This document shows positions 6,401 to 63,572 of a stretch of 64,000 bases of DNA, in pieces; the first letter of the stretch is position 1; every line of letters starts with the position of its first letter. The translations under genes were made by a program, and so were the position numbers. The notes beneath the pieces were generated by a model, which was not told where the DNA came from, did no database searches, and was given only the letters and a program-made list of their open reading frames with translations. Source of the stretch: Mytilus trossulus (Eukaryota). The stretch spans positions 2,728,001-2,792,000 of the forward strand of contig NW_026963297.1 of NCBI RefSeq assembly GCF_036588685.1, written 5' to 3'.

Positions 6401-7008
6401 ATCTCAATCCTTTTTTCTCGGCTGTAAGAATGCTGTTGCATCTAACGTTTTCTAATGCGCTATCGAGACATCTCTAGTATATTCAAACTACTGCAAATTA
6501 TAAAAATGGCTTTCATGAAGTAGCAACCACTTAATTTAAAAAAAGGGGGAGGGTTATTATTTTTATCTGAGTCAGATTTTTTTTCGCGCGTACGTTTTTA
6601 TTCTTTTTTTTTCGATGCTGGTGATCAAATACTTTTTTTTTCAACATTTAACACTATAATGTATGGGGAAATTCTTGATTCAGAATATTTTTTTTTATCA
6701 TCTGTATGACCATTTTTTTTTTTTTTATCAAATTGGGGATCGGAATATTTCCATTCCCATCCCCCACCCCCTTTTGAAGTCAAATGGTTGTTACCTTACC
6801 ACTAGAAAAATTTTCCAAAAATTTTGAATTCAGTTCTACGTAATGAACATTTAAATGACATATAGTTTACAAGTGGAAACAAATCTGTACAGGTAGCTAA
6901 ACAAGGTGTATAGATGATAGCAAATGTAATGTGAAACCAGTGTACACTACACTAAACTAATTGTAAACATGTTTACTCTCCACGGCGTTTGGTGTGAACA
7001 CGGCCTCA
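491..7008. repeat. Tandem array of ~1.42-kb units (4 near-identical copies plus a diverged partial fifth)
   Basis: Anchor GACTTGACGTACACAGAAATATTCGCC recurs at 491, 1914, 3337, 4749 and 6164 (periods 1423, 1423, 1412, 1415; differences mostly in poly-C length). The unit is a mosaic of MITE and retroelement fragments. Confidence 0.95.
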
Positions 7009-43190: not shown

Positions 43191-44860
43191 TCATTCACAA
43201 ATTTTGGAATAAATACATGTCATATAAAAATCAAGTAGTTTTGGCAACATACTATTACAAAAAACTTCATCAAAACAAATTCTCTCGATAAAAATGTTAT
43301 TTTTGCTAGCATTTGTCCATACAACAAAATCACACCATGGTAGACCCATAATTGCCATCTCTCCTTGCACTTGAGCATAGTACTTCTGATTTCTCTTCAA
43401 TTGTGGTCCCGTTGGTCCCCATTCTAAACAGAAATTAGCCGAATTTAGGTTTAAAATGTCCTCTATCTCCATAGTATTGACTGGAACTCCACCACATGAA
43501 AAAGGACACTTTATTTCTAGTACCCCGGTTTCTGTACCGTCTAAAACCATTCCATCACCAGATGCACCAAGAAAAGACATATGTGGGTAAAGCGTGAGCC
43601 CTGTGGGTAACACTGTTATATCTCCCTTTAAGGCTTTCTGGAAAGTAACATATTCCTGCCTTGCCCGGTCCTCCATGTCGACACCCCACTGCATGGCCTT
43701 TGGTAATTGAGGATACCTGTGGGAATAAGATACATATATATAAAAAAAAATTAATAGAAACTATCAGTTTTACAAATATTTTTAGCTAGATTAACCAACC
43801 ACAAACAAAATTATAACTTACATTGTATTTCATTTAGCTACAGTTTAGTGTGGTCATACTGGGTTATTTATAATTGACTTTAAAGACTCATTAAATTAAA
43901 AAAAAAGAACTAATACATGTTCATGTATTTAGCCTGAAATGACTTACTTATGTGATGTTTGTCAACTCATTTTGAGAGTCAATACATGCAGTTAACTATG
44001 AATTACAGTAAATAATTTATTTCATTGATTTATTTACAAATGTAAAAGAGATAATGTAGTGTATGAATGTTTAGCTTGAATGCTCATTTATACAAACTAT
44101 TAAGCAATAGTGAATAAGAGAAGTGAAGAACAGATAAGCATCTTGTTATTATTTAATATGAATCAATTGAAAGCAGAAGTGTACCTATCCAAGCTAGATC
44201 CTTCTAAAATCTGTTTCACCAGATGCTCTTGTGAGGAATGACATCTGAGAATATCCCCAAACATACTGCTTGTGATACGTCCTATGTGAAGGTCTTTCCA
44301 CATTTGGTTTTTTCTTTGGTCGCAAGTCTCCTTTTCAATAAATGTCACTAATTCCAGGCTTATCTCAACTGGTGGAACTGAAAATATAAATTTGAAAAAC
44401 AGTAACATAATTATATTCTCACAAAATTATGATTGTGGAAAAATAGCTTTTACAGCTGATTATACCTATGAACGTTGCTCATTATTGAAGGATGAACAGT
44501 GACCGACACTTGTTAATTTGCATCTCATTTAATTTTTGGTCTCTTGTGGAGAGTTGTCCACAGTGCAATCATATCACATCATTTTTTTTATATACATATA
44601 CACTGACAATGTATAAATGGTGCTTATCATGATCAAAGAGGGATAATCCATTGACAAAAAATTACCTTATGATTTTTTTCAATTCTAATATTGAGACTTG
44701 TTTATGACTTGATATTGTTGTTTTTTATAACACTCACTATTGTCTGAAGTAAACACCATTTTTCTCATAGCGAGCAGAAGTGGAGACTCTGTTGTAGTGA
44801 CCTCCTCAACAACCATTGCTTCTGGGGCCTTATCAGGGATGTTCCAAAGGCTACACATAC
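43191..44860 (-). CDS. YqaJ/lambda-exonuclease-like protein (ISL2EU ORF2), 5'-incomplete
   Basis: Exons 44860-44738, 44377-44185, 43716-43191. Motifs T..Q.....W......RITSS.FG, AMQWG...E, GL......FLGASGDG, LEIKCP, YYAQVQGEM.I.....CDFVVW. The first visible exon starts in phase 1, so upstream exons are absent or outside the window. Confidence 0.85.
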
Positions 44861-46829
44861 CTATAAAATAAATTTGTCATACTTAAAAGTGCAATATTTC
44901 AATCTATTTGCTTGTTTTATACAAATATTGTGCTGTTCTTGTGGTTATGGCATTGTACATACATAACACATGACGGACACAACTAATTGGTTATTTTATT
45001 TGTTTCAATAAGAAATTGTGTTTTCATAGACAAAACTATTATCGCTGTATAACATTGTAACATTTAGGAGTGAAAATTACAAATTTATTGATGAGAAAAA
45101 AAGGACAGAATAAAATTGATAATTAACAATAATTATGATTAGATACAACCAACTTTAACTGTAGGGCAGTACGTGTTATACCAACACTCCATGTTACATA
45201 AAAGTTAGGACAATGTATTTTTTTTCATACTGTGTATATATATAATTCATCACTATGTTGACAAAGTTTCAAATGAAGGTTTTAAGTGTTTTGCTGTGGG
45301 AAAAGAAGTAAAAATTTGAAATGAAAAACTCAACAGCTTAATTATAACCATAAAAAAATAAAGTAATGGATCAGTATAGGCCTATTTTAAAAAATTCTGA
45401 TAATTTAAAAGTCATCATTTATTTCATATAAGTATATATTAGACATCCAGTTTCTGATATATAAAACAAAATTTGTATAGGTTGAAATTTCCTTCAGAAG
45501 CCACCTACTTCAAAGCAGCCTTAAACTCATAACCCTTTAATGGGTATTAAACTTTAATTTTATTACAGGTTAATTACCATATAAGTTTTAAATTCATATA
45601 GCTGATAGTTCACACTTCTTGGTAGTCCTATAATATATGACTTCGCATTATATATTCACTATTTAACGTTTTCATGCTGATATTTTCATTTTTTATTTTT
45701 TGTCTAATGCGAAGTCATATCGGAATTGATCATTTTCCTTTAGCACTTTCCGCCCTGGTTTGACTGCGGAAAGAATATTGTGAAAATCTAAACTAGCATT
45801 TACTGTACATTAGAAGCATGAACATGTATTAATAAAAGACAAAAAAAATGAATGAAAAAATGTACTTACATTGTTGTGAAAGACTAAATTCCTTAATTAA
45901 TTATCCATGTTCATACCGAACTGATCGTTTGTTTTCCTCCGCCATATTTTAAATTCTGCTGAGTGTATAAATCTAATCGTGACGTCATAATCTTACAAAC
46001 CAAACTTTTTCGACACATTAATTTTTTACAAGTAATGTATTTAAAAATTTCAATGTTTTTACGGGAAATCTGTATGTTTTACATCTATCCACTTGGGAAA
46101 AGTCGGCGAGCGAGGCAATCCTCATTCACCATGTCATAAGGCAGTCCACTTTCACCATGTTTAACGGAAAATCTGTATGTTTTACATCTGTCCACTTTTA
46201 ATAAAATCGGCGAGCGAGGCAATCTTCATTCACCATGTTTAACGGAATATCTGTATGTTTTACATCTGTCCACTTTTAATTAAATCGGCGTGCGAGGCAA
46301 TCCTCATTAACCATGTCATAAGGCAGTCCACTTTCACCATGTTTAACGGAAAATCTGTATGTTTTACATCTGTCCACTTTTAATAAAATCGGCGAGCGAG
46401 GCAATCTTCATTCACCATGTTTAACGGAATATCTGTATGTTTTACATCTGTCCACTTTTAATAAAATCGGCGAGCGAGGCAATCCTCATTCACCATGTCA
46501 TAAGGCAGTCCACTTTCACCATGTTTAACGGAATATCTGTATGTTTTACATCTGTCCACTTTTAATAAAATCGGCGAGCGAGGCAATCCTCATTCACCAT
46601 GTCATAAGGCAGTCCACTTTCACCATGTTTAACGGAAAATCTGTATGTTTTACATCTGTCCACTTTTAATAAAATCGGCGAGCGAGGCAATCTTCATTCA
46701 CCATGTTTAACGGAATATCTGTATGTTTTACATCTGTCCACTTTTAATAAAATCGGCGAGCGAGGCAATCCTCATTCACCATGTCATAAGGCAGTCCACT
46801 TTCACCATGTTTAACGGAAAATCTGTATG

Positions 46830-47001
46830 TGTCAAAGATTCACGACCTTGTTCAAACGTACCCAACGTTACTATTGTTGACGTAACGTTATTGTAACGCA
46901 AACTTGTATGGGATCTGAATTATAGAATTGAAAGCAACACAACGTCTTTTTATTGCCTACAAAAGCGAAGTACTAACCCTAGCATCATAGCATCTTACAT
47001 A
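46830..47001 (+). repeat. 5' LTR
   Basis: TGTCAAAGATTC...CATCTTACATA, identical to 52599-52770. Confidence 0.95.
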
Positions 47002-47002
47002 T

Positions 47003-47016
47003 TGGTACCGTGACCG
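47003..47016 (+). promoter_or_regulatory. Primer binding site, tRNA-His-like
   Basis: TGGTACCGTGACCG just after the 5' LTR resembles the complement of the tRNA-His 3' end (TGGTGCCGTGACTCG). Confidence 0.6.
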
Positions 47017-50000
47017 ATGGATAAGCTGAAAGCAGTGAGAGGAGGCCACAGAAGCGCCGTAACCAGACAGATTCACAAAACTGACGAGAAAATCAACGAA
47101 GGAGAGATCACCCGACGGGACATTCATAGTGCCATTGAAAACCTTGAACGTAAACATGAACTTTTGCAGAAACTAGACGCTGAAATATTGGATTCCTTGG
47201 ATGCCGAAAGTGTGGAACAGGAAATTTTGGATGCAGACGAATTTAATCAGCATATAGACATTAATATTCGCCGCTACAAAGAATGTGATTTGGAGTTGAG
47301 ATCAAGTACACCTCAGGACTCGGTGAGTCAATTAACCTCAAGTATCGTACAAAATACTAGTACAACGCATTCATCTTCAAATAATTTCAATCAGAATACA
47401 AATCAGCACATGCAAACATCGACAAGTGCAAACTCACAAGGAGAATATGAGATCAACAGAGATCCGCCATTAAATGAAACTTATAAGTTCTATCACAAAC
47501 TTCCAAAACTAGATTTGCCGACTTTTTCGGGAGATTTACTTCTATGGCAAACTTTCTGGGAATCGTACGAAACTACTGTCCATACAAACCCATCATTGAC
47601 GAACGTACAACGTTTCACATATTTGAAGGCCCAGCTTCACGGAGAAGCGGAAAGTTGCATATCGGGATTGTCACTTACACACGCAAACTATGAGCAAGCA
47701 ATTTCATTACTACAAGCGCGATATGGTCAACAAGGAATCATTATTGATGCACATATGCAAAAACTAGTCGATTTGCCAAACCCCACAATGTCATTAAACA
47801 GTCTCAGAACATTCTATGACAAAGTTGAAACTAGTATTAGAGGCCTAGAATCACTAGGACAGTGTCAAACAAATTTTGGAACAGTACTTACACCCATCAT
47901 CTTTAGAAAACTACCACCGGAATTGAGAACTACATTGACAAGAGAGCATGATACAAGTACATGGACCATAGACTTACTACGGAAGGCTATAGGTAAGGAG
48001 CTGCGCGCTCAACAAGCTGGCCACGCTATGAACACAGATAATTTAACCCCTACCGCATCGTTTGTAACAAAGGCTACAATGAAAGGAAATTATAGACAAG
48101 TAAATAGAGTACACACAAACTTCAGGAACAACACTGAATCGAATAAACCCAAGCCATGCATATTTTGCAACAAATCCCATTCAGCTGTTGATTGCTCAGA
48201 GATTAAAGATAATGCCAGTCGTTACGAAATAGTCAAGAAAAAACAACTTTGTTTCAACTGTTTTGGTAAACATAAGATATCAGAATGTAGATCACGATAT
48301 AAATGTCGTAAATGTGACAAGAGACATCACACTGCTCTATGTAATCAGGAAATTCAAGCACCTGTACCTCCCGCTGATGCCGCCGCTGTCAATACAGTAA
48401 ATGTTAATGGAGAAGAAAGTAACCCTTTGTCAACGTTTTACACGTCAACACCACAAGCACAGGCACATACCGAGATACTTCTTAAGACAGCAGTAGCACC
48501 TGTATGGTTCGAGGATCGGAGCGCGATGTCTAACATTTTACTAGATGAAGGGTCTCAGAAATCATTTATTTCAGAAGATTTAGCAGCACAATTACAACTT
48601 AAACCTTGTGGAAATTCTACAATTAGTTTATCAACTTTTGGAAACGCCAACCAGAACGTGAGACACATGGATAAGGCTCAGATTACTTTAGAAATTGAAA
48701 CTGGTGGATTTATTCCTATGGATGTACTGATAGTACCGCGCATTGCCGCACCCCTCAGTAATGTTACAAATGTCATCGCTTCAAAACTGCCATATCTCAA
48801 AGGATTACGATTAGCTAACCCAGTCACAGAGGATAGGAAATTTGAACTTTCTCTTTTAATTGGAGCGGACTACTATTGGAGTATTGTGCAGGATCACGTG
48901 ATCAGAGGAGATGGGCCAACGGCCGTAAAATCCCGTTTGGGATACTTGTTGTCAGGACCGATGCATACTTTTACAGGAGAACAATCATCAACAGGAATGT
49001 TTAATGTACTGATTCAACATCAGCAAGAGGAAAGCAGCCTGGAAAAGTTTTGGGATTTAGAATCTATTGGTGTCAAAGCAGACGAATTAGAAACAACCAC
49101 CATGAAAGACTTCAATGATGAATACGAAACAAAATGCATAACTTACCAAGATAATCGCTATACCGCAAAACTGCCATGGAGAAATGATTTCAATGAGTTA
49201 CCTACGAACTATAATGTCACTTTACGCAGAACTTGTAATATGATCGATAGACTCAAAAAGGATACCAACATGCTGAAAATGTATGGCGACATAATTAAGG
49301 ACCAAAAACGCCGAGGGTTCATTGAGCGGGTAACAGAAAATGGAAACCAGTCAAACAGAATTCACTACATTCCTCACCATGCAGTAAAAAAGGACTCATC
49401 TACGACTCCTATACGTATAGTCTATGATTGTAGTTGTCACGAATCACCTCACAAGGCTAGTTTAAACGATTGTCTCATGTCAGTTCCGCCGATGTTAAAC
49501 GATTTGACGGGAATTTTAGCTAGATTCAGATTACACAAGCACGCAGTGACTACCGACATAGAGAAAGCGTTTTTGAATATCGAACTGGATAAAGAAGATA
49601 GAGACGTCACAAGATTTTTTTGGTTGAGTGATCCATCTGACCCAGACAGTCCACTGATAACTTACCGTTTTAGAGTCGTTCTATTTGGAACTACATGCTC
49701 ACCTTACATCTTGAATGCCACCCTTATGAAGCACTTCAAACTCAATTCTTGTAAAACAGCCGAGATACTGAAAAACGACCTGTATGTTGACAATGTTTTG
49801 TCAAGCTTCTGGGATGAGAAAGAAATGCTGAAATTCTACAGAGAATCGCGAGATTTATTGGCAAGAGGAGGATTCAATCTGAGATCATGGACGTCAAATA
49901 GCACAGAATTACTACGCTTAGCCCAATCTGAAAAATGCATAGAAAGAGATACGAACATCAAAATTCTTGGTCTCCGTTGGAATGTGAACAACGATCAAAT

Positions 50001-52434
50001 CTCGTTTCGAAACAACATAAATACAACAACGGAAAGGATAATAACAAAACGTGAGATCTTAAAACAATCTTCAAACATTTATGATCCGCTAGGTCTGCTT
50101 AGCCCCGTCACCGTCAGAACAAAGATGTTAATGCAATTGTTGTGGAAAGAAAAGTTTGCATGGGACTGCCCTTTACCAAAAGAAATCGAATCAACATGGA
50201 GTGATTTGACCAAAGATCTACAATTTGCAATGAACATTGAGATTCCTAGATGTTATTTTGAGTGTTCAGGAATAACGGACATTGAAACAGCAGAATTACA
50301 TATTTTCACAGATTCAAGTCAACTAGCTTATGGAACTTGTGCGTATCTTGTCACAGAAAAGGAGTCTGCATTAATAATGGCAAAGAATCGAGTTGCCCCA
50401 TTGAAAAGTGTCACTCTACCTAATCTTGAACTGATGGCTGCCCTTTTAGGGGCTCGACTTGCGAAACATCTTATTCAAAATCTACATATTGGAAACTTAC
50501 AAATCAACTTCTGGTGTGACAGTCAGATCGTTTTGAAATGGCTTCAATCAACAAAACCACTCAAAAAGTTTGTCGCAAACAGAGTCAAGGAAATTAAGGA
50601 GTCAAATGAAAATCAAAAATGGCGTTATTGTCCGACGGATGCAAATCCTGCAGATTTATTAACTAGAGGCATAACAGGAACGAAATTCATAAACAACAGA
50701 TTATGGTTTCATGGACCCGAGTGGATAACAGACAAAACACAATGGCCAACATGGAGCGGAAACGAAATTGTTGAAAACGAGAATATAATGGAGATTCCCA
50801 CTAATGAAACCTCAGAAAAACAGCACGTCTTACTCACATCTCAGAAACGTCAAGAATTTGGCATACATAAGATTATGGATATCGAACGTTATAGCAGTTT
50901 GAAGACATTAATACGTGTTACAGCCTATGTGATGAGATTTATACAAAACTGTAAGTTAGCACGGAGTGATAGAACATTGTCGGAATTGACCGTTAATGAA
51001 ATACAGCATGCTACATTGACATGGATACAAACGGTTCAGAAATCAGAATATCATGAAGTCTTTAATTATTTCAACAAATCTGTGACAGTTAAGCCGTCTA
51101 TTGTAAGACAATTCAACTTGTACTTTGATGAAAAAAATGCACTTCGTTGCCGCGGGAGAATTCAACATGCACCTTTGGAGGAATCAGCTAAACATCCATA
51201 CTTGTTACCTCCGTTACATAGACTCACTTCACTCATTATTATGGATGCTCATATCAATCATTTACATGAAGGCGTCAACTCTACCGTAACACACTTGCGA
51301 CAAGTATACTGGATACCTCGAATTCGTCAACGAGTCAAAGTTATTCTTAGAAAATGCGTTAACTGTTGGAAAGTAACAGGGCATGCTTACCAACAACCTG
51401 ATCCACCGCCACTGCCCAAAGAGAGGTTACACGAGGATATACCGTTTACTGTTACAGGCGTAGACTTTGCTGGTCCTATGTATGTGCGAAATACAGATGA
51501 TATAAAATCAAAGGTATACTTATGTTTGTTTACATGTGCGTCGACGAGAGCTGTTCATTTAGAACTTGTGAATAACTTATCAGAACCTACATTTATGTTA
51601 GCCTTCAGAAGATTCGCAAGCAGGAGATCCTTACCGAAGTTACTAATATCTGACAATGCACTAACTTTTGAAGCAGCCAGTCGAGAAATCAAACATCTTA
51701 CAAACTCAAATTTAGTGCGCGAAAGTCTAAGCTCTACAGGAACAAATTGGAAATTTATTACAAAGAAAGCTCCGTGGTTTGGTGGTTTCTATGAACGGTT
51801 GATTGGGTTAACGAAAATGTGTTTGAAGAAAGTATTAGGAAGTAACTGTGTCGATTTAGAGACTTTACAAACTGTGTTAACAGAGATCGAAGCAACTCTC
51901 AATGATAGACCTCTAACGTATGTTTCATCCGATCTTACGGATCCAGAACCACTGACACCATCACATCTTTTGTATGGTCGAAAAATTACGCGACTTCCGT
52001 ATCCAGATAGTGAAAACAATGGACATTTTGAACCAATTAACTTTAACAAACGTGTTCAATTACAAAGAGACATTCTAAACCACTTTCAACAGCGATGGAA
52101 ATATGAGTATTTGACCTCATTACGGGAACATCACAGAAGTGTCGGAAATAACGAACAATCGATAGCTATTGGTGATGTTGTTCAAATACATGACGAAACT
52201 TTAAGAAATTCATGGAAACTCGCCGTTGTCGAAGAACTCGTAAAAGGAGAGGATAATCTTATCAGAACTGTAAAACTTCGCACTAAAAACGGAACCACCA
52301 ACCGCCCAATCACGAAATTATACCCAATCGAAGTGAACTGTATTGAATCTGAACCGGAGGATGTTACACGACCCAAGATGTTCCGTCAGGCGAAGTCAGA
52401 TGCTGTACAAAAGATTCACGAGTGGACAAAATAA
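47017..52434 (+). CDS. BEL/Pao Gag-Pol polyprotein (1805 aa)
   Basis: Gag (KLPKLDLPTFSG; three Cys/His knuckles), protease LLDEGS, RT YVDN, Pao-type RNase H LHIFTDSS..AYG, integrase HHCC plus GVDFAGP/SDNA/YERL, C-terminal WKYEYL domain. Confidence 0.96.
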   Translation: MDKLKAVRGGHRSAVTRQIHKTDEKINEGEITRRDIHSAIENLERKHELLQKLDAEILDSLDAESVEQEILDADEFNQHIDINIRRYKECDLELRSSTPQDSVSQLTSSIVQNTSTTHSSSNNFNQNTNQHMQTSTSANSQGEYEINRDPPLNETYKFYHKLPKLDLPTFSGDLLLWQTFWESYETTVHTNPSLTNVQRFTYLKAQLHGEAESCISGLSLTHANYEQAISLLQARYGQQGIIIDAHMQKLVDLPNPTMSLNSLRTFYDKVETSIRGLESLGQCQTNFGTVLTPIIFRKLPPELRTTLTREHDTSTWTIDLLRKAIGKELRAQQAGHAMNTDNLTPTASFVTKATMKGNYRQVNRVHTNFRNNTESNKPKPCIFCNKSHSAVDCSEIKDNASRYEIVKKKQLCFNCFGKHKISECRSRYKCRKCDKRHHTALCNQEIQAPVPPADAAAVNTVNVNGEESNPLSTFYTSTPQAQAHTEILLKTAVAPVWFEDRSAMSNILLDEGSQKSFISEDLAAQLQLKPCGNSTISLSTFGNANQNVRHMDKAQITLEIETGGFIPMDVLIVPRIAAPLSNVTNVIASKLPYLKGLRLANPVTEDRKFELSLLIGADYYWSIVQDHVIRGDGPTAVKSRLGYLLSGPMHTFTGEQSSTGMFNVLIQHQQEESSLEKFWDLESIGVKADELETTTMKDFNDEYETKCITYQDNRYTAKLPWRNDFNELPTNYNVTLRRTCNMIDRLKKDTNMLKMYGDIIKDQKRRGFIERVTENGNQSNRIHYIPHHAVKKDSSTTPIRIVYDCSCHESPHKASLNDCLMSVPPMLNDLTGILARFRLHKHAVTTDIEKAFLNIELDKEDRDVTRFFWLSDPSDPDSPLITYRFRVVLFGTTCSPYILNATLMKHFKLNSCKTAEILKNDLYVDNVLSSFWDEKEMLKFYRESRDLLARGGFNLRSWTSNSTELLRLAQSEKCIERDTNIKILGLRWNVNNDQISFRNNINTTTERIITKREILKQSSNIYDPLGLLSPVTVRTKMLMQLLWKEKFAWDCPLPKEIESTWSDLTKDLQFAMNIEIPRCYFECSGITDIETAELHIFTDSSQLAYGTCAYLVTEKESALIMAKNRVAPLKSVTLPNLELMAALLGARLAKHLIQNLHIGNLQINFWCDSQIVLKWLQSTKPLKKFVANRVKEIKESNENQKWRYCPTDANPADLLTRGITGTKFINNRLWFHGPEWITDKTQWPTWSGNEIVENENIMEIPTNETSEKQHVLLTSQKRQEFGIHKIMDIERYSSLKTLIRVTAYVMRFIQNCKLARSDRTLSELTVNEIQHATLTWIQTVQKSEYHEVFNYFNKSVTVKPSIVRQFNLYFDEKNALRCRGRIQHAPLEESAKHPYLLPPLHRLTSLIIMDAHINHLHEGVNSTVTHLRQVYWIPRIRQRVKVILRKCVNCWKVTGHAYQQPDPPPLPKERLHEDIPFTVTGVDFAGPMYVRNTDDIKSKVYLCLFTCASTRAVHLELVNNLSEPTFMLAFRRFASRRSLPKLLISDNALTFEAASREIKHLTNSNLVRESLSSTGTNWKFITKKAPWFGGFYERLIGLTKMCLKKVLGSNCVDLETLQTVLTEIEATLNDRPLTYVSSDLTDPEPLTPSHLLYGRKITRLPYPDSENNGHFEPINFNKRVQLQRDILNHFQQRWKYEYLTSLREHHRSVGNNEQSIAIGDVVQIHDETLRNSWKLAVVEELVKGEDNLIRTVKLRTKNGTTNRPITKLYPIEVNCIESEPEDVTRPKMFRQAKSDAVQKIHEWTK

Positions 52435-52598
52435 CTTTTCAAATTATGATCGAAATAGACTGTTCAAATTCAAAGTGATTAATTCTTTCTTTTATGATAC
52501 ATAGACTTTAAAGTTAAGTGATGAATTATGATATATGTCTTCAATTTAGTCAAATTTTCATTTCATTTTTATTTATATTTCACTTTCGGCGCCCGGAG

Positions 52599-52770
52599 TG
52601 TCAAAGATTCACGACCTTGTTCAAACGTACCCAACGTTACTATTGTTGACGTAACGTTATTGTAACGCAAACTTGTATGGGATCTGAATTATAGAATTGA
52701 AAGCAACACAACGTCTTTTTATTGCCTACAAAAGCGAAGTACTAACCCTAGCATCATAGCATCTTACATA
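52599..52770 (+). repeat. 3' LTR
   Basis: Identical to the 5' LTR; preceded by a GC-rich PPT-position tract CGGCGCCCGGAG. Confidence 0.95.
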
Positions 52771-53403
52771 GTATGTTTTACATCTGTCCACTTTTAATAA
52801 AATCGGCGAGCGAGGCAATCCTCATTCACCATGTCATAAGGCAGTCCACTTTCACCATGTTTAACGGAATATCTGTATATTTTACATCTGTCCACTTTTA
52901 ATGAAGTCGGCGAGCGAGGCAATCCTCATTCACCATGTTGCATAAGGCAATCCACATTCACCATGTTTAACGGAAAATCTGTATGTGTTATGTCTGTAAC
53001 TACGGGGGTGTTTAACGACTATGAATATCCATGAGGGTCATTCACAGTAATGTTTCTTCTTCTTTGTTAATTGTCTTTGTAAGGCTATCGAGTGTCCATA
53101 TGATACATGTAGTACATGTCCGATTTCCACTAAAAATTTTATAGCAAAATTTACAGTCTATAATTGATGAACTAAATAAAATATTGTTTTCATTGTGATA
53201 TATTTCTACCAGAATTTCCAATAGTTGTTTGAAATAGAGAAATTGTATATTTCGAACGAAAAATTAATTTCGGCGAGCGAGGCAATCCTCATTCACCGAA
53301 ACGAGAAATTAGAAATGGAAGAATTTAAATACCTTAAAATGAAGAAAAAATATCTTCAGTTAATCCTAAATTCCAAATTTTATTATTAAAATTAAATGAA
53401 TAT

Positions 53404-54135
53404 TCAGTAACATTTTTTAAGAACAAGTTGCTGGAGTTTTCGTAGCCAAACTTCCGCCAAAAGGTTTATAGGGTGAATGCCATCTTTATACAAGTCTTTA
53501 AAATTATATGAGTATTTCGTCCTCATAGAGGACCGGTCGCGACCGCGCCTTACTTTGCTGGACTTTAATATGTCAAGAGAAAATTTTGGTCCTGTATCGG
53601 CCGCATTTAAAGAAATTAGTTCTTCGTTTAACTGATCAATTTTTTCAGCTAATACATTATCATCTCCATTTGAGCTAGATTCTGTGTGAACTTGTTTGTC
53701 ATTCCACAATTTAATTGAAAAATGTGGACAGTGTAAAAATATTATTTCAGTTGTCGGATTAACCTCCAAAATTTCCTTCTTGACATCAACCAAATCGGCC
53801 AAAACGTTTGCCACAGATATTTCATTTAAAGAAATATTTCTATCACCCGGCGAGAAATTGGTGAAGTCACAGGTTCCTGTCCAAACCATTAAAAGCGGCG
53901 AATCACACCCTCTAACAGAATCCTTTGCTCTTCTAAGAAGTGATTTGTTACTGCTTTTTGCCCCCTTTTTAAACAATATCTCAATTATATCTTCGTCACG
54001 ATTAACAACATCTTGAAGGTATTTCCCCTTACTGTCCGTCATCAGAATAGCTTTTCTGCGAGGATTATTCCTGTTAGCCAAATTAAATTCGGTTTCAAAA
54101 CGGTCAAGTTGTTTTCTTAAATTTGAATACGACAT
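53404..54135 (-). CDS. SGNH/GDSL hydrolase-fold protein (243 aa) inside the Academ element
   Basis: Intronless intact ORF. Block I ILMTDS, block II KKGA, block III VWTGTCD, block V DGIHP, in SGNH order and spacing. Confidence 0.75.
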   Translation of the reverse strand: MSYSNLRKQLDRFETEFNLANRNNPRRKAILMTDSKGKYLQDVVNRDEDIIEILFKKGAKSSNKSLLRRAKDSVRGCDSPLLMVWTGTCDFTNFSPGDRNISLNEISVANVLADLVDVKKEILEVNPTTEIIFLHCPHFSIKLWNDKQVHTESSSNGDDNVLAEKIDQLNEELISLNAADTGPKFSLDILKSSKVRRGRDRSSMRTKYSYNFKDLYKDGIHPINLLAEVWLRKLQQLVLKKCY

Positions 54136-54165
54136 TTTGTCAAATTACAAATGTAAAAAGAAAGC

Positions 54166-54187
54166 CACGTGGTATTTTCCCGCCAAA
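54166..54187 (-). promoter_or_regulatory. Candidate E-box plus E2F site upstream of the SGNH-like ORF
   Basis: CACGTG at 54166-54171 and TTTTCCCGCCAAA at 54175-54187, 30-50 bp before the ATG at 54135. Motif match only. Confidence 0.35.
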
Positions 54188-54837
54188 TAAAATCTAAGAC
54201 ATAAGTCAAGTAATCAATACGTTTTACTGCTGTAGATACAAAAATCATATATGTATAAGGCTGCTTTATTTCCGTTAATGTCATGTCGTGAGGCAGTTAA
54301 TCGTGATAACGGTATAATATACTATTTAAACGAATTGTGAGCAGACTCCCCCCCCCCCCCCCCCCCTAAAAAAAAATCTTATTGCATTTATTACAAATCG
54401 GTTTCTTGGGAAGAATTTATCGGTTATTTATAATTTGCATTTATTCTATACATAAAGGTGTCTACTCTTAATCAAGTGATTGTACACGTACTCTTTGAAA
54501 TCCGGGGATGTATATCAATACATCGGATCCCGTGCCTTGTCCACTTTGATTCTTTTTATTACATTTGTCATGATCATTTCGGGACCTTTTAAAACGGACT
54601 ATGCGGTTTGGGTTTTACTTATTGTTGAAGGTTAACCGATATTTGCTTACATACTATTTATTTGCACTTTGATGGATAGTTGTCTCGTTGGCAAACACAC
54701 CCCAGTTTTTTTTTTAATTAGTGAAATAAATATCGACAATTTAGAGTTTTTGTTCCAAACAATTCATACATTAATTTTTGGTTTAAATAATGTTATGCAT
54801 TCTTCCATTTCTAAACCTATGATATTTTTGTATGTAC

Positions 54838-57800
54838 TCAAGCGTCAACTATAATCCTCATGATCCTCCTGCGTTTGTCCAATCTTTTTGAGAGCTGTTT
54901 CATTTTTCCTTGAAACTTTCCAGGAAATTTTGGATTTTCGTTGTGAATATACTCTGGAAAAGCTCTATGATGACGACCAGGAGTCTGTGAAAACAAAGAC
55001 TCACCACCAAGAAATGTAATCATTCTGCTGACGTTTAAGTCCCGGTCTGCATTTCGCCGCCTATGTCTATAAAGCTCGTTTTCAATTACTTTGGAATCAA
55101 ATACAGAGTCCAATGCCTCACCAAGTGGTCCTACAATCTGACTACATCTTTGTATTGTATTATTGGTGTACCTACCCTTTGCGGAATCTAGTAAATCCTT
55201 AAATAATCTGTTTAAAATTTCGTTCATGAAATCCATTGGTAAATTTCGACCAATTCCACCCCCGTAGTTAACTGTTCTGTTGTAAATTAAATCGTGCTTC
55301 AATTTATCTGGAAGCCAACCATTTATCGAAACTAACAGTCTATGTGCTAATATGACATATTTTGGATGTTTTGTCGAAAAGAAGTGTACGAGGTCTAACT
55401 TCCAGTGCGACATCATGGCCTCACCGTCCGCCTCACGAACTGCATCTCGTCGGCAGAGCAGATTCAGTCCTGTCCATGTTATAGCCCTACTGTAATTGTA
55501 TTTGAAATCGTCGGACTTGTTTACAGTTGATCTTGACTTAGATTTCTTTCGGCTCTTAGACTTTTTTGACGATTTGCATGCAGATCTACAGTACCAATTG
55601 CCTTCTGGAACGTTTGTCATGTCCAAGCATTTAGTGTGGTACCATTCGTCTGCCGTGCACTTGGAACCAGCACTACACCCAATCATTGGCTCATCATTAC
55701 CGAGATCTTGATGACAGGTGCAGTAAGGGTAGGAGTCTTTCTCGTTTCTGCATGTGTCGCTGCAGAACCAATTATTAGGGAGATTTTCAGTATCCAGTCC
55801 AGCACATGAATAGTGAAAGACTTCACCCTTAGTACAATTCCTACCAGCCCCACACAGTATGACTTCCTCTTCGATGTCTTCTCCACAACAGAATTTCTCC
55901 GGCTCTGTCTGGTCATCCGTTTTCAAAGATTCTGTTTCCAAATGGTGCCAAACATTTTGAACAACAGAGCTAACAACAGACTGTAAATACTCTTGTCTGT
56001 CGTCAACAGACGAGTTTTCTATGGATTCAGGGGCTGTTGATGGTCTATCGCCCTTTTCTGCCATTTCCATAAGTTCCATAGTTAATAAGCAGACATATCC
56101 TTCTGTTACCAAACACATTAACTGCCATGCGTGGTTAAAATTGTCCGATATGTCTGATTTAACTTGACGAAAGTTGAAAATGTTTTTCAGATGATTAAGT
56201 GTTCCTCTGTCTGCAGCACTGGAACCCTTAAAGAACTCATCGAAGTAGTCCTGTAATAAAATCATCTCTTTGTGAAACTCTTGTACTGCAGGCTCGCAGC
56301 CTTCCAATCTTTCCCATGGATTCAAACCATTTACACGTGCCCTGTGTGCATCATTTCCTCGTTCACAACTGAGTCCATCGCCATATACTATCGCAGTGTA
56401 AGGTTTGTCCTGTATAGATGGTATATACCTTTGCAAATTTTCATAAATAGTAATGGCCCCTTGAGTAGAGGAAGGATCGACATCAAAAACTCCAAGGTTA
56501 ATTAGAACACTTCTCTTTGATGAATCCAGTGAATATTCATGAAGCATATGAGAAGTGACACAGTCGGAGAAGTTGGCATTAAACCATGGTAAGTATCGGG
56601 TTATAATGCGAGCGACCATAACTTTCATTCTGTTTGATAGAAGTTCAAAATCATTCTCATTTGGAACAAAAATGTTTGATGGTAGTTCAGCTGCCTTCTT
56701 CAACTCTTCATCGAACTTCCAGTTCAAATGAGTGGTTTGAAGACGGTTGATGGCTATGTATCCTAGAGCCATATTCAGATACGTATTTTTTGAGGTTTCA
56801 GATGGATGTCTACTGGTAACCTTTTTTCCAACATTATCCCAACACATGGAGAAGCCGGGATGTAGATCAATTTGTTCTTTCTCTTCGTCAGATTCATGTG
56901 AAATTACCGACTGTTCATCGCCGTCCGAAATATCATCTGCATCATCTGACGATAAATGTATACCATCACTATTCGAATGGTCACTAAGGGAGTCATCTAG
57001 AACATCATCGTCATCTGTGTCTTCCATTCCATACGGAATTGTATCGTCCATGTTCATTATTATTGTATCCTGGCTGCTAGCTGATAAACTGTTGACTTCG
57101 TCCTCTATGTTAGGAACAACAGCAGCTATAGCTACAGACAAGTCTGCATCTTCATTTGTCACATTGATTCGTCTAACATTTTGTTGTTGATGTTGTTCCT
57201 CAATTATTATTTTACATGTTGTTGCAGCAGAATCAAAGCCTTGCCTGATTTTGTTCAAGATAGATAAGGTGGTATCATACCCTTTACATATTCCGGTATG
57301 TGCAATTTGTTTCATGACATTGCGTTTTAAGCCACCTCTCCAAAACTGTACTGAAAACAGAGACGGAAGAAAGCTAGCAGTCTTAGGAGCTCTAGCGTTG
57401 AGAATGCAGGCAATAGATGTTCCAATCTGTGGTCCTAAGTTTACAGATTTTCCTCTGATTAGACTGTTTTCATTTGCCCGTTTGGTAACTGCCCCTCTTA
57501 GGACATTAGACAGCAATGGACATGCCTGTTCAAAGTCATTTAGAGTCTTTGTCCACGAAAATTGTTCCAGATTAACTATGTTGACATCTTGGAACAAGGG
57601 GAATAGTTTTTGTCCTAGCAATGTCAATACTTCTCTTCGCACCAGGTTCACAACAACTTTGGTGAACGATTTTTTGCTGCCTTTTGTTGCGGTGTACATA
57701 CCTCTTATTGCCCTACCATATTGTCTAGCTTTTACTGCTGAGATAATAGATTCCCACTTGGTACTTTTTGAAGCTTTTTTGGAAAAAAGATTCTTTGCGA

Positions 57801-58975
57801 CTCCTTTTTTCTGTAATGAAACATTTTGAGCTAAGTATCAATATCTAATTATGAATTTTCGTTACAGCTAATTTCCTAATGCTTGTAGAGTAAAACTTTG
57901 GTTGGCTTGCTGTCTTTGTTTGTATAATTGTTTACTCAAATTTGTAATTAAGATTGATATCTCCAATTTTTTGGATTTTTTATGAAAGTTTGTTTCCAGT
58001 TTTTGGAGAAAAAATAATTTGTTTTCAACATGAGAAAAAAATGTTTGTTTCACCCTCAGCTGCCACTATATGTAATGCAAAAATTAAAAGAAAAAAATAG
58101 TTGTCAACTTGTCGCCAAAAAAATAGATTGTTTTTTCGCCAAAGTCGAAAAAAAGTTAGTCCAGAAAAAAAACCCTATAGCCCCCCCACCCCCCAAAAAT
58201 ATCAAATGTTGCTGCCTAACCTTCATACTAAGTCTTCATTCACATGCATTAGGAAATTAGCTGTAATTTGTTATTGCTTATCACCCCACCCCGAATCCGC
58301 ATGTGAAAACAATAGTGCAGCATGGTATTATTTGCAAGTCTATAGAAACAGGTCAATAAGAAGATCTTGAGCATTGAATTTAAACAGTGATAATTAAATA
58401 TAAAGTTGTACAGGTTTTCCATTTTTAATGAAGTGTTCCCCTTTCCACGAAATGTACCATTACGCACGCAAATGAACTAGCCGGGGCTGAATTGATTATA
58501 TATACTAGCAAAATATACACCCCCTCTCTATCTGTCATATAAAGAAAGGAATACTTTATGAAAAAAAAATCACTTGTCATTCATAAATACCACTATTTAC
58601 TTTTCTATATTAAGTGCATATTACCTGGCATGGTGTACTAGTAAATCGAGCTTTCTTGATAGGGGAAGTCTTTGTAATTCCAGTACTGTGTCTTTTTTTC
58701 TGACTAATATAAGAATCGGAAAATGTCCTTCCCCAAAATTCATTCAAGGAATTTTGGTATTTTGCAGTGTCATTAAGTCTGGTCCAACATTCTGGACACA
58801 CAAATTGTCCTAAACGTTTGCTGGAAACAGGGGTAAAAGTTGCACCCGTAACATCTGTTAGCAAATCTCTGGCACTCTGATCTCCAGTAAGGGAATTCTC
58901 TAGCGAAAATCTAAAGTAACCCTTATCTCCTTTTTTTTTGGAAAACGCTTTGTTACAGTTTGCACATGCAGCCAT
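54838..58975 (-). CDS. Academ transposase with two inserted PHD fingers, 2 exons, ~1107 aa
   Basis: Exon 1 58975-58625 (CxxC...CxxC zinc-finger-like N-terminus) joins in phase 0 to exon 2 57810-54838. Core motifs WDNV, GDGLS.ER, EFHKEM, AVREADG, HPKY, NRTVN..G..GRN..MD..NE..N. PHD motifs FHYSC...WFC and WYHTKC...WYC; acidic tract. Confidence 0.88.
57865..58263. mobile_element. Tc1/mariner-like MITE in the transposase intron, holding a MITE fragment
   Basis: TA-CAGCTAATTTCCTAATGC ... GCATTAGGAAATTAGCTG-TA. The interior shares sequence with the 167-461 element. Confidence 0.6.
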
Positions 58976-59034
58976 CGTGGTTTCAAGCAGACGTGAAAAG
59001 GGCGCCAAAATAATAATCCGACAAAAATAAAGAA

Positions 59035-61090
59035 ATGGACATCAAAAGTATCAACGCAAATTTTGAATCAGTTAAAGCCAGTTACAATATAGAATATGAA
59101 GCTAAAGTGGAGCAGCTTCAAGTTGTTTTGTCTGTGCTGAAAGGACGAAATGTATTAGCCTTACTTCCAACTGGATTTGGAAAAACTTTATGTGTAGCCA
59201 TACCAACCATGCTGTCAGAAGATAAAGATTGTATAACGATAGTCATATCTCCATTGACTTTGCTGATCGATGACCAAATATGCAGACTTAATAAACTGAA
59301 TGTACGCTGTGCTAAAATAACAGGAATAGGTGAAATGGAAAGACAGACAGTAACAGGTACATTGAACTTTATTTGGCAGAAATGGGGGGGGGGGGATATT
59401 ATAAATTATTATGTGTGAAAAGAATATAACTGCCGCCAATTTTCCTTTTCAAAAAAGGAATCCATTCTATACCTTTTTATTATCATATATTCACGATCAT
59501 TCACATATAAAGAAATCAACGCCATACGATCAAATTCCCGTCATGTAAATTCATTTTTCGATTTATTGTATTGATAATATTTATCTCATTCATCTTTGGT
59601 ATGTGCCCCTATTCTACTAAAACTTTTTTTTATGTCAATTATAATTTCATAATACTTATTAAAGTTAAACGACGGTGGGAGGGGGAACCACTGAAGCGTG
59701 ACTGAAGCAGCCACTTAGGTCAGTTAGCCTTAGGTCAGTCAGCCTTAGGTCAGTCAGCGGACCCCCTTTCCTTACAAAAAGTAATGGATCCGCCACTGCA
59801 CATATAAACAAGTATACACGGACTTTTATAGTTGACTATGCTGTATAGACTTGCTCATTGTTGAAGGTCGTATGGTGACCTGTAGTTGTCAATTTCTATG
59901 ACTCTATGGAGAGTTGTCTCATTGGCATTCATACCAGATCTTCTTTTTTTTGGCCAACAATTGTACGCGGTTGTAATTTATGGTCAATCACCTTCTTGAT
60001 TTAAATATTAATTTTTTCAGAAATAACCAATGGAAAGTATTCAATTGTCTTCTCATCGCCTGAATCAGTTTTAAAGCCTTATTGGAAAACTGTCTTCCTC
60101 TCAGCTACGTGGCAAACTCACTTGAAATTAATTGCAATCGATGAGGCGCATTGTATATCCGAATGGGGGGATGATTTCAGAAAAGATTACCAGCAGTTGT
60201 ACGAGCTAAGAAGCTTCTTTGGAGCTCCTTTGATGGCATTGACTGGGACTTCAACAAAAAAAGTTAAAAAGGACATAATGGAACACTTGCAACTACTAGA
60301 CGAAGACACTGATCTTGTATACAAGTCACCAGATAGGCCAAACCTATATCTACAAATCTTAAAAAAAGAAAGCACGGATTACGATTCTTGCTTAGACTGG
60401 TTAATAAACCATATTCGCACTAATGGCAAGAAATCGAAAAAAATTATTGTTTACTGCAGATCTATTGACGCAGTATCTGAAATATTTTGTTGTTTAAAAG
60501 ATAGTCTCGGTAAAATGGCTTATGTTGACGGAATTGTGGATGGTAATCAAGTACTTCTGGAGATGTATCACAAAAGCACACACCAGGATTCGAAAGACCG
60601 AATTATCAACGAATTCAAGACAAAAACTAGTCGTATCAGGTGCATTATTGCTACCGTGGCGCTAGGAATGGGTTTGGATATTTCAGACATAGACTTAGTT
60701 GTCCATATTGGCTGTCCAAAAACAGTTCTTTCCTATTGGCAAGAGGCGGGTCGTTGTGCTAGGGATGGTCGACAGGGATATAGTTTGATCTTGTATGACA
60801 ACTTTACTCTTGCCCTCAAGACAACAGACAAAGATATTGCTGATATTGTAAAAAATAAAGACGGGAAATGCATTCGAAAGCAAATTTTAGATGTATTTTC
60901 TGATGAAGACAGCAATCAAGAAATTGAAAAAGAATCTTGTGAAGGTTGTGAATTGGATTGGTGTCAATGCAGCATGTGCAAGTGTTGTACACTTTGTGCC
61001 TCTAAATGTCAGTGTCACACAAGATGTAGTTTTAGTGTACAGAAATTTTTAAATGAAATTCAGAATGTAAATACTACAAATACAGACTGA
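59035..61090 (+). CDS. RecQ-like superfamily 2 helicase of AcademH, 2 exons, ~463 aa
   Basis: Exons 59035-59356 and 60021-61090 (1392 nt). Motifs LPTGFGKT, VISPL, SPE, DEAHCISEWG.DFR, ALTGT, ATVALGMGLD, YWQEAGRCARDG, and a C-terminal Cys cluster. Confidence 0.92.
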
Positions 61091-61107
61091 AATATGGTAT
61101 GGTAGAC

Positions 61108-61438
61108 GGTGAATGAGGATTGCCTCGCTCGCCGGGTATAGGAGACGTATCTATAGTTGTACATTTCTGTGTCAATTTGATATCTTATGGAGAGTTGTCT
61201 CACTGGCAATCATACCACATATTCTTTTTAATATTTCTGATTCATGTATAAAACAAAAAATATTTGTGATCCATGTATAAAAACAAACAAAAAACAGACT
61301 GAAATGTAGTAGACGGTGAATGAGGATTGCCTCGCTCGCCGAGAATGGCAGTCTATTTCTGTTCCAATGAAAATTACAATGTACACACCACAGACTGAAA
61401 TCATAATAGACGGTGAATGAGGATTGCCTCGCTCGCCG
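61108..61438 (-). repeat. Academ right subterminal motifs (3 copies)
   Basis: GGTGAATGAGGATTGCCTCGCTCGCCG at 61108, 61315 and 61412 is the reverse complement of the left minisatellite core. Confidence 0.9.
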
Positions 61439-62776
61439 GGTATAGCAGTCTATTTCTGATACATTTACTAAATTGCAATGTATACTGTTACAATCTTATC
61501 CTGATCCATTTTCAGAAATGCAATGTAGACGATCATTTACAGAAGCTATCAAATTTTCAGATTTTCTGTTAAGGACATATTATATACATAAACTGTATAT
61601 GGTTATCTATATATAATTTTTATATCTATTTAAGAAAATATAGTATTGATAAAGATGCCGATTTTTTTAATTCATGATCATCACTTATTACTTCACTTTA
61701 GTACCATTTGGCACTGGTGCTCCAATAACGGAGGAATATAATTTGGAAAAAATTCGTTTTGTTCCCAATTTCGATTTTTATGTTGACCAGAGTTTTTGAA
61801 TTTCACCGGTGTCAACATCAATGACCTGGATAAACTTTTCTTTCTTTTGGATTATTTAAGGAGAAACAATCAATATAACTACCATAATTCAGGTAAGTAA
61901 TCACTTCTTAACATATTTAAAACATTTACGTGGCTGGTCAAATCAGAATTAAATTTTTTTTCATGCTACGCGTTTTTTGCCAATCGCGATATGACCTCGG
62001 GTGGCACATTGATAGTAAAAAGAAAATATCAGAACAGCAAATGTAAATAGTGAACAAAGCCTCCGAGGTCATATGTTAGCAAATGTAAATAGTGAACAAA
62101 GCCTCCGAGGTCATATGTTATAGGACTAAAGCTTGTGCTGTGACAAATATAGTAAGACACTGTCACCTTTTGTTATAAATAGTATTGTTACCCTCATGAC
62201 TAGAACATGTTACCTCTCTGATGATTTTGCTCACTGGCAAATGGTGGTCAAGGGAGCTAATTAGTTTACTTTTGGAAGGCAAAGTTGACCTTCACCTTTA
62301 CTTCTGAATGGCGTCATCACTGCTGATGACAGAACATTTAATCCAAAAATATTAAAGTTTTTGTCTTATTCAGAAATTGAGAAAATATTGCAAAGATGCT
62401 TTGTATAGTAAGTTGAAGACATACATGTAATATGTTGAATATCTCATAACTAAGCAAATCATTTTCCTGACACATCTGACATGATCAGATTCTGGGCATG
62501 GGAGCACATCGCCACATGATGACGGGCACATGCAGTTGTTTCTGTCATTGTAGGGTTAACTATCTCCACACCCATACAAAAATAGATGTGGATAGTAGAA
62601 TCCACATTGACAGAAACAAGTGCCTGTGCATGGGAGGTTGATGAAAAAACCTTAGGTCAGTATTCACCTTATTTAACTCCCTGCATGGTCAGCTTATTTA
62701 CTGTGAACAACCAGGTGTGAAATTCACATGATATTAAATTTAAATGAATAATAAACATGTTTCATATACCAGGGTG

Positions 62777-63572
62777 TAGTCCTATTCTTATTCAATTTTT
62801 AACGTTTTTATACTGTCTTACTGATATTTTCATTTTTTATTTTTTTTGGGGTGTAATTAAGCCATTTTAGTGTTCAAAGATTCAGATCCATTTAACAATT
62901 TACAAATTACATTAACAAATATAGGTTACTGTACAGCCTTCAACAATGAGCAAAGTCCATACTGCATAGTCAGCTATAAAAGTCCCTGATAAGACATTGT
63001 AAAACAATAGACCACTTTCGAGTTCATCCGTCACCGGCAAAAACTCGTCAATTATACACGCCTTTATGACGTCATTTACCAGATAGAGGGGCTCGCCTGT
63101 ATCCCTGCACTATTTACGTTCATCAAGCGTCTTAGTGATCGTCTTTGTGCAGGATAAACTAGAAATAATGGTTGCTCTGTAGGTACTTACTGACATTTCC
63201 CTAATGACAGCAGTGTTGATTGTCAATTTTGAGAATTCAATTTTCCGAATAATTCGTACAATATAGAATTATAGTTTTCCAACCACTCGCTCAACATTGG
63301 AAGGAAGTGACGACGCCCCTAAACGCTCAAATGACGATGATAAAGGCGCATATAATTGACGAGTTTTTTCCGGTGACGGATGAACTCGAAAGTGGTCTAA
63401 TTCAAGGGAAAACTATTGGCCTTATTTTTGTAAAAAAAATGAAAGAAAAACAAATTTATATGTAACACATAAACAAACGACAACCACTAAACATTGATAG
63501 TAAAAAAAATTTGATCAGAACAGTAAATAGAAATAGTAAATAATGCCCCCGAGCTCATATGTTATAGGACTA
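62777..63572. mobile_element. Non-autonomous AcademH element
   Basis: TAGTCCTAT ... ATAGGACTA termini related to the large Academ; perfect 9-bp TSD ACCAGGGTG (62768-76, 63573-81). Confidence 0.88.
63009..63398. mobile_element. MITE with ~65-bp TIRs and 3-bp AAT TSD (PHIS-like)
   Basis: AGACCACTTTCGAGTTCATCCGTCACCGG... / ...CCGGTGACGGATGAACTCGAAAGTGGTCT, with AAT at 63006-08 and 63399-401. Confidence 0.8.

Follow-up and report, generated by a model that had tools for sequence, protein, structure and literature searches.

A putative SGNH-fold hydrolase gene is a conserved component of an AcademH-type DNA transposon lineage in the mussel Mytilus trossulus

Results

The SGNH-like gene and its position

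A 64,000-nucleotide stretch of the genome of the mussel Mytilus trossulus (contig NW_026963297.1, positions 2,728,001 to 2,792,000; hereafter the window, which is C22:2728001-2792000 in the searched genome of 1.3 Gb) contains an Academ DNA transposon, for which a third gene encoding an SGNH-hydrolase-like protein had been predicted in addition to transposase and helicase. This putative SGNH/GDSL-fold accessory gene is located at 53404..54135 on the minus strand. Both the listing of open reading frames (ORFs) and the sequence bear out an intact frame with an ATG start, zero internal stops and 243 amino acids (aa), and the protein begins at its own Met as a free-standing polypeptide of ~240 aa. 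In an alignment of 21 sequences, comprising relatives of the ORF at 27-93% identity, TDS (D34-S35), G58, GTCD (G87-T88-C89-D90) and DGIHP (D218-H221-P222) form invariant columns. This confirmed the motif assignment of the original prediction, with a retained Ser-Asp-His triad (S35, D218, H221) and a Cys (C89) replacing the Asn of block III. A 106-aa ORF with a TTG start on the opposite strand (53696..54016) lies inside the gene and was taken as a by-product.

On the strand that also encodes the transposase, the gene follows 702 bp after the transposase stop codon, and ~100 bp separate its own stop from the nearest copy of the left subterminal repeats (53238-53301). Since the termini of the element lie at 45623 and 62128, the ORF resides inside the Academ transposon, just as had been proposed. 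The limits of the element (45623-62128) were taken from a comparison with three further full-unit copies of 98.7-99.2% identity on C13, C8 and C14. These copies are collinear with the window from 52839 to 61816 or 62078, so the SGNH-like gene has no insertion boundaries of its own.

The left end reads TAGTCCTATAA... at 45623 and the right end ...TTATAGGACTA at 62128; the outermost 11 nt of the left end are the exact reverse complement of those of the right end, while bases further in match imperfectly. The left terminus with its terminal inverted repeat (45623..45672, plus strand) starts with TAGTCCTATAATATATGAC, and similarity to the three other copies begins here. The right terminus (62079..62128, minus strand) ends with ...GTCATATGTTATAGGACTA and is preceded in the window copy by a 42-bp local duplication at 62017-62120, immediately within the end of the element. 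Similarity in the copies on C8 and C14 stops at the sequence matching window end 62128, and both are flanked by target duplications of 10 bp (CTATAGACCA on C8 and CATTTATTGC on C14; two of the four copies).

The other genes of the element

The transposase (54838..57699, minus strand, 953 aa) matches DUF6589 (PF20231), which we take to be the core of Academ transposases, with an E-value of 3.2e-30 and 105.6 bits against a cut-off of 27. Its match to a PHD finger is weak (E 0.0037, under the cut-off). A RecQ-like helicase is encoded in two coding blocks on the plus strand: the first (59035..59418) covers a DEAD domain (PF00270, E 1.3e-11) and the second (60122..61090) the end of DEAD together with Helicase_C (PF00271, E 2.2e-18). 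Among solved structures, BLM, WRN and RecQ come closest to it (E ~1e-30). The earlier assignments of both genes were thus upheld, and the element in the window is young and of the AcademH type.

Between these two genes, upstream of the transposase, a zinc-finger-like ORF of 132 aa (58610..59008, minus strand) shows a weak match to zf-AD. It starts 26 bp from the helicase ATG on the opposite strand, and counterparts with 55% identity occupy the same place in two diverged Academ families. This ORF may be a separate, fourth gene, or else it may contribute a DNA-binding domain to the transposase as a 5' exon. As a consequence, the proposed module of three genes holds with regard to the linkage of SGNH-like gene, transposase and helicase, but is incomplete in that the conserved zinc-finger-like ORF, maybe a transposase exon, also belongs to it.

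Stable linkage and purifying selection

A six-frame search of the genome gave at least 154 matches to the SGNH-like protein, and DUF6589 had 103 matches. Comparing the two match lists by eye, together with a tblastn search using the transposase, revealed 12 places at which an Academ transposase is followed, on its own strand and within ~2 kb, by a homologue of the ORF. The window family accounts for four of these, a decayed copy was seen on C6, two further families contribute five intact loci (C8:67.5 Mb, C8:29.3 Mb, C3:33.1 Mb, C12:49.7 Mb and C14:80.8 Mb), and C1 and C5 hold fragments. One element of each further family was compared, and both have the same order and strands as the window element, with SGNH-like gene, transposase and zinc-finger-like ORF pointing in one direction and the helicase in the other. 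The 11-nt terminus on the helicase side is likewise identical in both to that of the window element. Compared with the window proteins, identity is 49% in the SGNH-like protein, 58-66% in the transposase, 49-68% in the helicase and 55% in the zinc-finger-like ORF; across all family comparisons, the SGNH-like ORFs share 48-49%.

Within a family, the ratio of non-synonymous to synonymous substitutions (dN/dS) is uninformative, because only 2-15 differences separate each pair. Between the families synonymous sites are saturated, with proportions of synonymous differences (pS) of 0.65-0.80 and of non-synonymous differences (pN) of 0.35, resulting in a dN/dS of at most 0.23-0.33. The SGNH-like gene is therefore under purifying selection between Academ families, and since an intact frame is kept in three families with saturated synonymous sites, its conservation exceeds chance. 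Its retention by three diverged families in an unchanged position and gene order, combined with this selection, contradicts a one-off capture or a separate insertion.

A conserved motif upstream of the gene

The region ahead of the start codon contains the motif GCGGGAAA-N4-CACGTGG (54165..54183, minus strand, 30-48 nt before the ATG), which occurs once in the window with zero occurrences expected. All three families retain GCGGGAAA and CACGTGG with a spacing of 4-7 nt, starting 35-48 nt ahead of the ATG, and the remaining non-coding DNA upstream of the ORF cannot be aligned between families. The motif was present at 9/9 intact Academ-linked ORF loci of the three families and at none of the non-Academ loci fetched (LINE, i.e. 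long interspersed nuclear element, and gypsy copies). Its two halves resemble what we presume to be an E2F site and an E-box.

Predicted fold and active site

An AlphaFold2 model built on the 21-sequence alignment reached a mean pLDDT of 85.8 and a pTM of 0.84. It shows a three-layer alpha/beta/alpha fold with a parallel central sheet, as expected for SGNH proteins, preceded by a single 17-residue helix (residues 3-19) ahead of strand 1. Foldseek matched the model to 73 PDB chains at E<=0.001 with a probability of 1.00. Among the matches listed, all natural proteins bear SGNH/GDSL-type names (esterases, acylhydrolases and acyltransferases), accompanied by three designed scaffolds. VIA-align superposed the model on many SGNH structures with Z scores of 15-18 across 170-182 residues, the top two entries being designed scaffolds; examples are the acylhydrolase 4ppy (Z 17.3, 180 aligned, root-mean-square deviation (rmsd) 3.0) and the brain platelet-activating factor (PAF) acetylhydrolase 1bwp (Z 16.0, 171 aligned, rmsd 2.9). 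Lipase_GDSL (PF00657) weakly matched 4 of the 21 family members (best E 1.8e-4), PF13472 (Lipase_GDSL_2) matched one (E 0.049), and the neighbors in a protein atlas include GDSL and PAF-acetylhydrolase-like clusters. Hence, the product of the ORF is predicted with good confidence to adopt the SGNH/GDSL hydrolase fold that had been suggested for it.

SGNH proteins have the Ser, Gly and GxND motifs after the first, second and third strand, respectively, and D-x-x-H ahead of the final helix. The model reproduces this layout: Ser35 follows strand 1 (block I, T-D-S35-K-G after strand 29-33), Gly58 strand 2 and G-T-C strand 3, and D-x-x-H sits before the last helix. Ser35 and Gly58 occur in 21/21 rows of the alignment. 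Among 154 proteins (P0001-P0154), Ser35 is kept in 138/140 aligned relatives, Gly58 in 133/144, and Asp218 and His221 each in 138/139. Block III deviates, reading G87-T-C89-D in place of the GxND that provides the oxyanion-hole Asn. Cys89 is found in 147/153 aligned relatives and Asn in five, which have GTND at the same columns; because these five align there, Cys89 is the counterpart of the block III Asn. It may tune the oxyanion hole or supply a second reactive group.

The near-universal exchange of the Asn also fits a non-catalytic protein that kept the fold in order to bind RNA, DNA, lipid or protein, comparable to the OSK domain of Oskar, to which the model aligns with Z 13.8 (5a4a). A Lys/Arg-rich hairpin (residues 190-210), modelled at lower confidence, would suit such a role as well. 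However, Ser, Asp and His are each kept in all but 1-2 of 139-140 aligned relatives, which is hard to explain without catalysis, and the canonical GTND persists in five members, making a pure binding module rather unlikely in our view.

Relatives of the gene in retroelements

Outside Academ, relatives in the same genome share 28-35% identity and do not adjoin DUF6589. The best 30 of the at least 154 places (L001-L030) consist of the 12 Academ loci and 18 others. For these 18, the downstream neighbor is Ty3/gypsy gag and pol at five loci, a PHD-containing ORF of 774-834 aa followed by an apurinic endonuclease-reverse transcriptase (APE-RT) at six, and APE-RT directly at four; three have no neighbor within 1.5 kb, two of which proved to be LINEs once more DNA was taken. 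L014 was assigned only by kinship, as a near-twin of L026 in the tree described below.

The five gypsy copies share a 5' boundary 466 bp ahead of the SGNH-like ORF. An 8.1-kb representative (G000:C11; L037:4146-10000 with L043:1-2243) has identical long terminal repeats (LTRs) of 260 bp and carries the ORF between 5' LTR and gag, a layout common to all five. The LINEs fall into two types: in the first (L038, L040, L041, L042, and L026 with L055) the SGNH-like ORF is followed by a PHD ORF of 730-830 aa and APE-RT, and in the second (L039, L023-L025, L029) it directly precedes APE-RT. While these relatives of 28-35% identity thus represent the first ORF of an APE-RT element, as known for LINE esterases, the ORF in the window does not. 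A joint acquisition of PHD finger and esterase from a LINE was considered and rejected, as a BLASTP comparison of the transposase with four PHD ORFs from LINEs returned only a generic PHD match (E 0.007 in this four-sequence database).

The Academ gene shares ancestry with retroelement first ORFs, and LINEs contain members of its protein family much more often than Academ elements do. Because it is commoner in LINEs and also present in gypsy elements, we regard the esterase as a module common to several element classes and not as an invention of Academ.

A profile search of 1.84 billion representative sequences yielded 1738 proteins at E<=0.001, including 272 at E<=1e-30, with a prevailing length of ~240 aa; cluster names among the relatives point to Mytilus coruscus and M. 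edulis proteins. In an unrooted tree of 122 rows, eight Academ-linked ORFs and seven database proteins are set off by a branch with an SH-aLRT support of 99, and the gypsy rows as well as the APE-type LINE rows each form one group. The tree leaves out L001 (identical to the window), L010-L012 (fragments), L037/L038 (same places as L013/L018) and those database proteins that are shorter than 200 aa, longer than 300 aa or numbered beyond P0100. Scanning metagenomes with the alignment of the Academ clade gave nine loci at 25-35% identity, none of them linked to Academ; L050 and L045 show the LINE layout. In another of the nine, L048 (a metagenome contig of 8883 bases), an SGNH-like piece at 6256-6917 comes after a BEL/Pao-like pol and before a gag-like start; this layout may point to one more LTR class that carries the ORF upstream of gag, from a different organism.

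As the closest non-Academ relatives are LINE first ORFs, the gene in the window could in principle be the 5' end of a LINE that landed in one Academ copy and has been carried passively. But no LINE sequence follows the ORF, whose stop is only ~100 bp away from the subterminal repeats. Moreover, the gene occupies the same place in three Academ families at a dN/dS of at most 0.33 with saturated synonymous sites, the Academ-borne ORFs form their own clade, and the upstream motif is absent from the LINE and gypsy copies. Such a passive LINE remnant is hardly conceivable. Almost as improbable is the capture of a cellular SGNH gene in the manner of Helitrons or Pack elements with no role for the transposon, although there is a precedent in the platyfish, where a Helitron reportedly captured a host SGNH gene (PMC4021074). 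Here, the best 30 places all lie in or beside mobile elements (29 tested directly, L014 by kinship), no single-copy host paralogue stood out among the at least 154 matches, and purifying selection persisted across the diversification of Academ.

Transcript data

Three RNA-seq runs with the same species label were searched, of which 6-18% each was read. The transposase received a few reads in one of the three runs only. Run X1 and similar data sets, labelled 'RNA?', are probably DNA: their depth is even (13-19), and contigs end at a poly-C tract. This tract of ~20 C followed by A9 (54343-54366) lies between the transposase and the SGNH-like gene; contigs of X1 break there, and RNA reads display back-and-forth, artefact-like joints.

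Further features of the locus

The left subterminal repeats are split into an outer part (46053..46832, no strand assigned), with staggered multiple matches to the arrays of the other copies, and an inner part (52771..53301, no strand; repeat family D1, inverted pairs I4 and I8-I15), whose core CGGCGAGCGAGGCAATCCTCATTCACC has the opposite orientation to the right-hand repeats. The latter (61098..61463, no strand) belong to repeat family D3 and form inverted pairs with the left repeats. A 5.9-kb LTR retrotransposon foreign to Academ (46829..52770, plus strand) is nested between the two left parts. Its 173-bp LTRs (46829-47001 and 52598-52770) are identical, gag-pol is one ORF of 1805 aa (47017-52434), the LTR matches many other sites in the genome, and many near-identical copies exist elsewhere: this retrotransposon is young. 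Its insertion into the left repeat array explains why the left terminus is found 7 kb beyond the repeats on the ORF side.

The C13 copy (G000:C13:170500-186499) is collinear up to window position 61816 and then joined to an inverted right terminus, and on its left it is flanked by window 61807-61866 in reverse complement. This rearrangement suggests a self-insertion, or else an inversion involving two copies. In the window, a second Academ-type right terminus at 63503-63572 is 79% like the first and also ends with TTATAGGACTA; it lies 1.4 kb past the element without a partner in view. A 405-bp unit with 37-nt inverted ends (57862-58266), located between transposase and zinc-finger-like ORF, is probably a high-copy miniature inverted-repeat transposable element; its coverage by RNA reads and contigs greatly exceeds that of the neighboring sequence, and many of these reads and contigs continue into unrelated sequence. 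Just outside the left end of the Academ element, we noted a PIF/Harbinger-type transposase ORF with DDE_Tnp_4 (41860-42684, plus strand) and a YqaJ-like recombinase ORF (43191-43694, minus strand).

Discussion

An esterase-fold gene as part of an Academ sub-lineage

The Academ-borne esterase-fold gene is an integral and selected part of an Academ sub-lineage. We consider it likely that the ORF represents a working SGNH-fold accessory gene of mussel AcademH elements, maintained by selection and belonging to a family shared with retroelements. The module would have been exchanged once between element classes, most likely from a retroelement to an Academ ancestor, and kept since. We infer this direction because the retroelement side is far more diverse and holds the members with the canonical Asn.

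Several points weigh against this interpretation. The tree is unrooted, which weakens the direction assumed for the transfer, and the named members of the Academ clade come from Mytilus coruscus only. No family was detected for the window protein in Pfam at E<=1, and searches of PDB sequences with the window protein and with the 21-sequence profile returned only noise, so the SGNH assignment rests on the predicted structure and the motif positions. The oxyanion Asn is absent, and activity may consequently be altered or lost. Moreover, any function is assigned by analogy alone, with the ORF1p esterase of ZfL2-1 as the model. The sequences flanking the window copy (CACTTCTTGG at 45613-45622 and AAGCTTGTGC at 62129-62138) do not form a target duplication, and not a single read of the three RNA-seq runs fell on the SGNH-like ORF. 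This silence, together with the high identity of the four copies (98.7-99.2%), which makes intactness within the family little informative, could also mean that the gene was once functional and that the present copies are unexpressed relics, intact merely through their youth. Yet the reads cover a fraction of three runs from unknown tissue, genes of mobile elements are often restricted to the germline or to certain stages, and conservation between families implies a function at least until the recent burst. We hold a silent relic to be improbable.

Possible roles of the protein

Since the module serves elements that are copied via RNA as well as cut-and-paste elements, its role would be a step common to both modes, and its presence in a cut-and-paste element argues for a benefit independent of an RNA intermediate. 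These findings suggest that an esterase-fold helper protein serves mobile elements whatever way they move. By analogy with ZfL2-1, we tentatively put forward that the Academ protein might be an esterase or acyl-hydrolase which binds acidic membrane lipids and acts in trans on a host substrate, not on the nucleic acid of the element. Such a predicted esterase would target a host lipid or acyl mark. Candidate roles could be membrane-linked trafficking of element proteins, their access to the nucleus, or the erasure of an acyl or acetyl mark on which a host control pathway relies.

A wider scenario, which is conceivable but which we view with some doubt, is that a single esterase cassette with a family-wide Cys might circulate among all major classes of bivalve mobile elements, bringing a benefit that is independent of reverse transcription and of ribonucleoprotein (RNP) particles. 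The classes concerned would be LINEs, gypsy and other LTR elements and, uniquely, one cut-and-paste DNA transposon, which might have given the cassette its own promoter element. The cassette would then act in a host-directed step, for example passage of membranes or the nuclear envelope, germline targeting, or the removal of acyl marks from the host defence. If true, the long unexplained role of the LINE ORF1 esterase would be recast.

Independent of this scenario, the Academ gene provides a natural experiment, in that any role proposed for the esterase has to benefit LINEs, LTR elements and a transposase-helicase element alike. The element is young, exists in four near-identical copies and comprises three or four genes, which makes it a simple test system, and the Cys at the oxyanion position is a concrete biochemical target.

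Comparison with known systems

AcademH DNA transposons were reportedly described by Kojima in 2020 (Mobile DNA 11:15). To our knowledge, they are documented with transposase and helicase only, and in one animal sub-lineage the transposase contains a PHD finger. The element presented here has the DUF6589-type transposase, the RecQ-like helicase and the 10-bp target duplications in common with AcademH; compared to this description, a third conserved gene, the SGNH-like one, and a conserved zinc-finger-like ORF are added, so the sparse description of Academ gains one gene. Passages of a published account give 9-10 bp for AcademH target duplications (PMC10045372), and no esterase is mentioned in the AcademH or Academ passages of the citing papers searched. 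A full-text search found nothing that joins Academ with an SGNH esterase, Repbase, Dfam and the AcademH description itself lying outside this comparison.

With type I PAF acetylhydrolase alpha subunits, bacterial GDSL acylhydrolases and sialate O-acetylesterases the Academ protein shares the predicted fold (Z 15.6-17.3, 170-182 residues, rmsd ~3 A), but only 12-17% identity without a sequence match, and it carries Cys in place of Asn. The Drosophila Oskar OSK domain is alike in its SGNH-like fold; OSK is listed as non-catalytic, whereas the Academ-related family keeps the triad.

An esterase domain in ORF1p of CR1/L2/RTEX-type LINEs was reportedly noticed by Kapitonov and Jurka in 2003, and its role in LINE ORF1 proteins has been open since. 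For ZfL2-1, the available passages of a structural study describe the ORF1p esterase domain as active and binding to acidic phospholipids and liposomes, but not to oligo(A), and its authors propose membrane-linked roles and lipid functions tied to the handling of RNPs (Schneider et al. 2013, PMC3905857). Both proteins are element-encoded, of the (in Academ predicted) SGNH fold and equipped with a Ser-Asp-His triad, and the LINE relatives in the mussel genome encode the same family as first ORF, together with a PHD protein. In contrast to ZfL2-1, the carrier here is a DDE cut-and-paste transposon without an RNA intermediate, and the Academ protein is free-standing with ~240 aa, and only one short N-terminal helix is predicted where LINE ORF1p has a long, dimerising coiled coil ahead of the esterase. 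According to the same passages, Asn195 contributes to the oxyanion hole of ZfL2-1, a position taken by Cys in the Academ-related family when compared by description; the solved ZfL2-1 esterase was not among the 50 VIA-align entries listed.

The closest parallel to the distribution of the gene is found in bdelloid rotifers, where excerpts of two studies report a GDSL esterase/lipase as ORF3 of LTR retrotransposons (Rodriguez et al. 2017, PMC5408684) and GDSL ORFs in Athena/Terminon Penelope-like elements (Arkhipova and Yushenova 2019, PMC6431247), the sharing of which is read there as module exchange and not as host capture. Like in the mussel, one type of accessory ORF is distributed across unrelated element classes. 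The rotifer ORFs are placed 3' of pol and have, according to these excerpts, the canonical S-G-N-H, whereas the gypsy copy described here carries its ORF 5' of gag. All rotifer cases are retroelements, and the term 'DNA transposon' does not occur in PMC5408684. SGNH esterases in LINEs, LTR and Penelope-like elements are thus already known, as is AcademH itself; a DNA transposon with a retroelement-type esterase module among its stable genes is, as far as full-text searches can tell, new. The Academ case adds a DNA transposon to this list of classes and extends the sharing of accessory genes between retroelement classes to DNA transposons.

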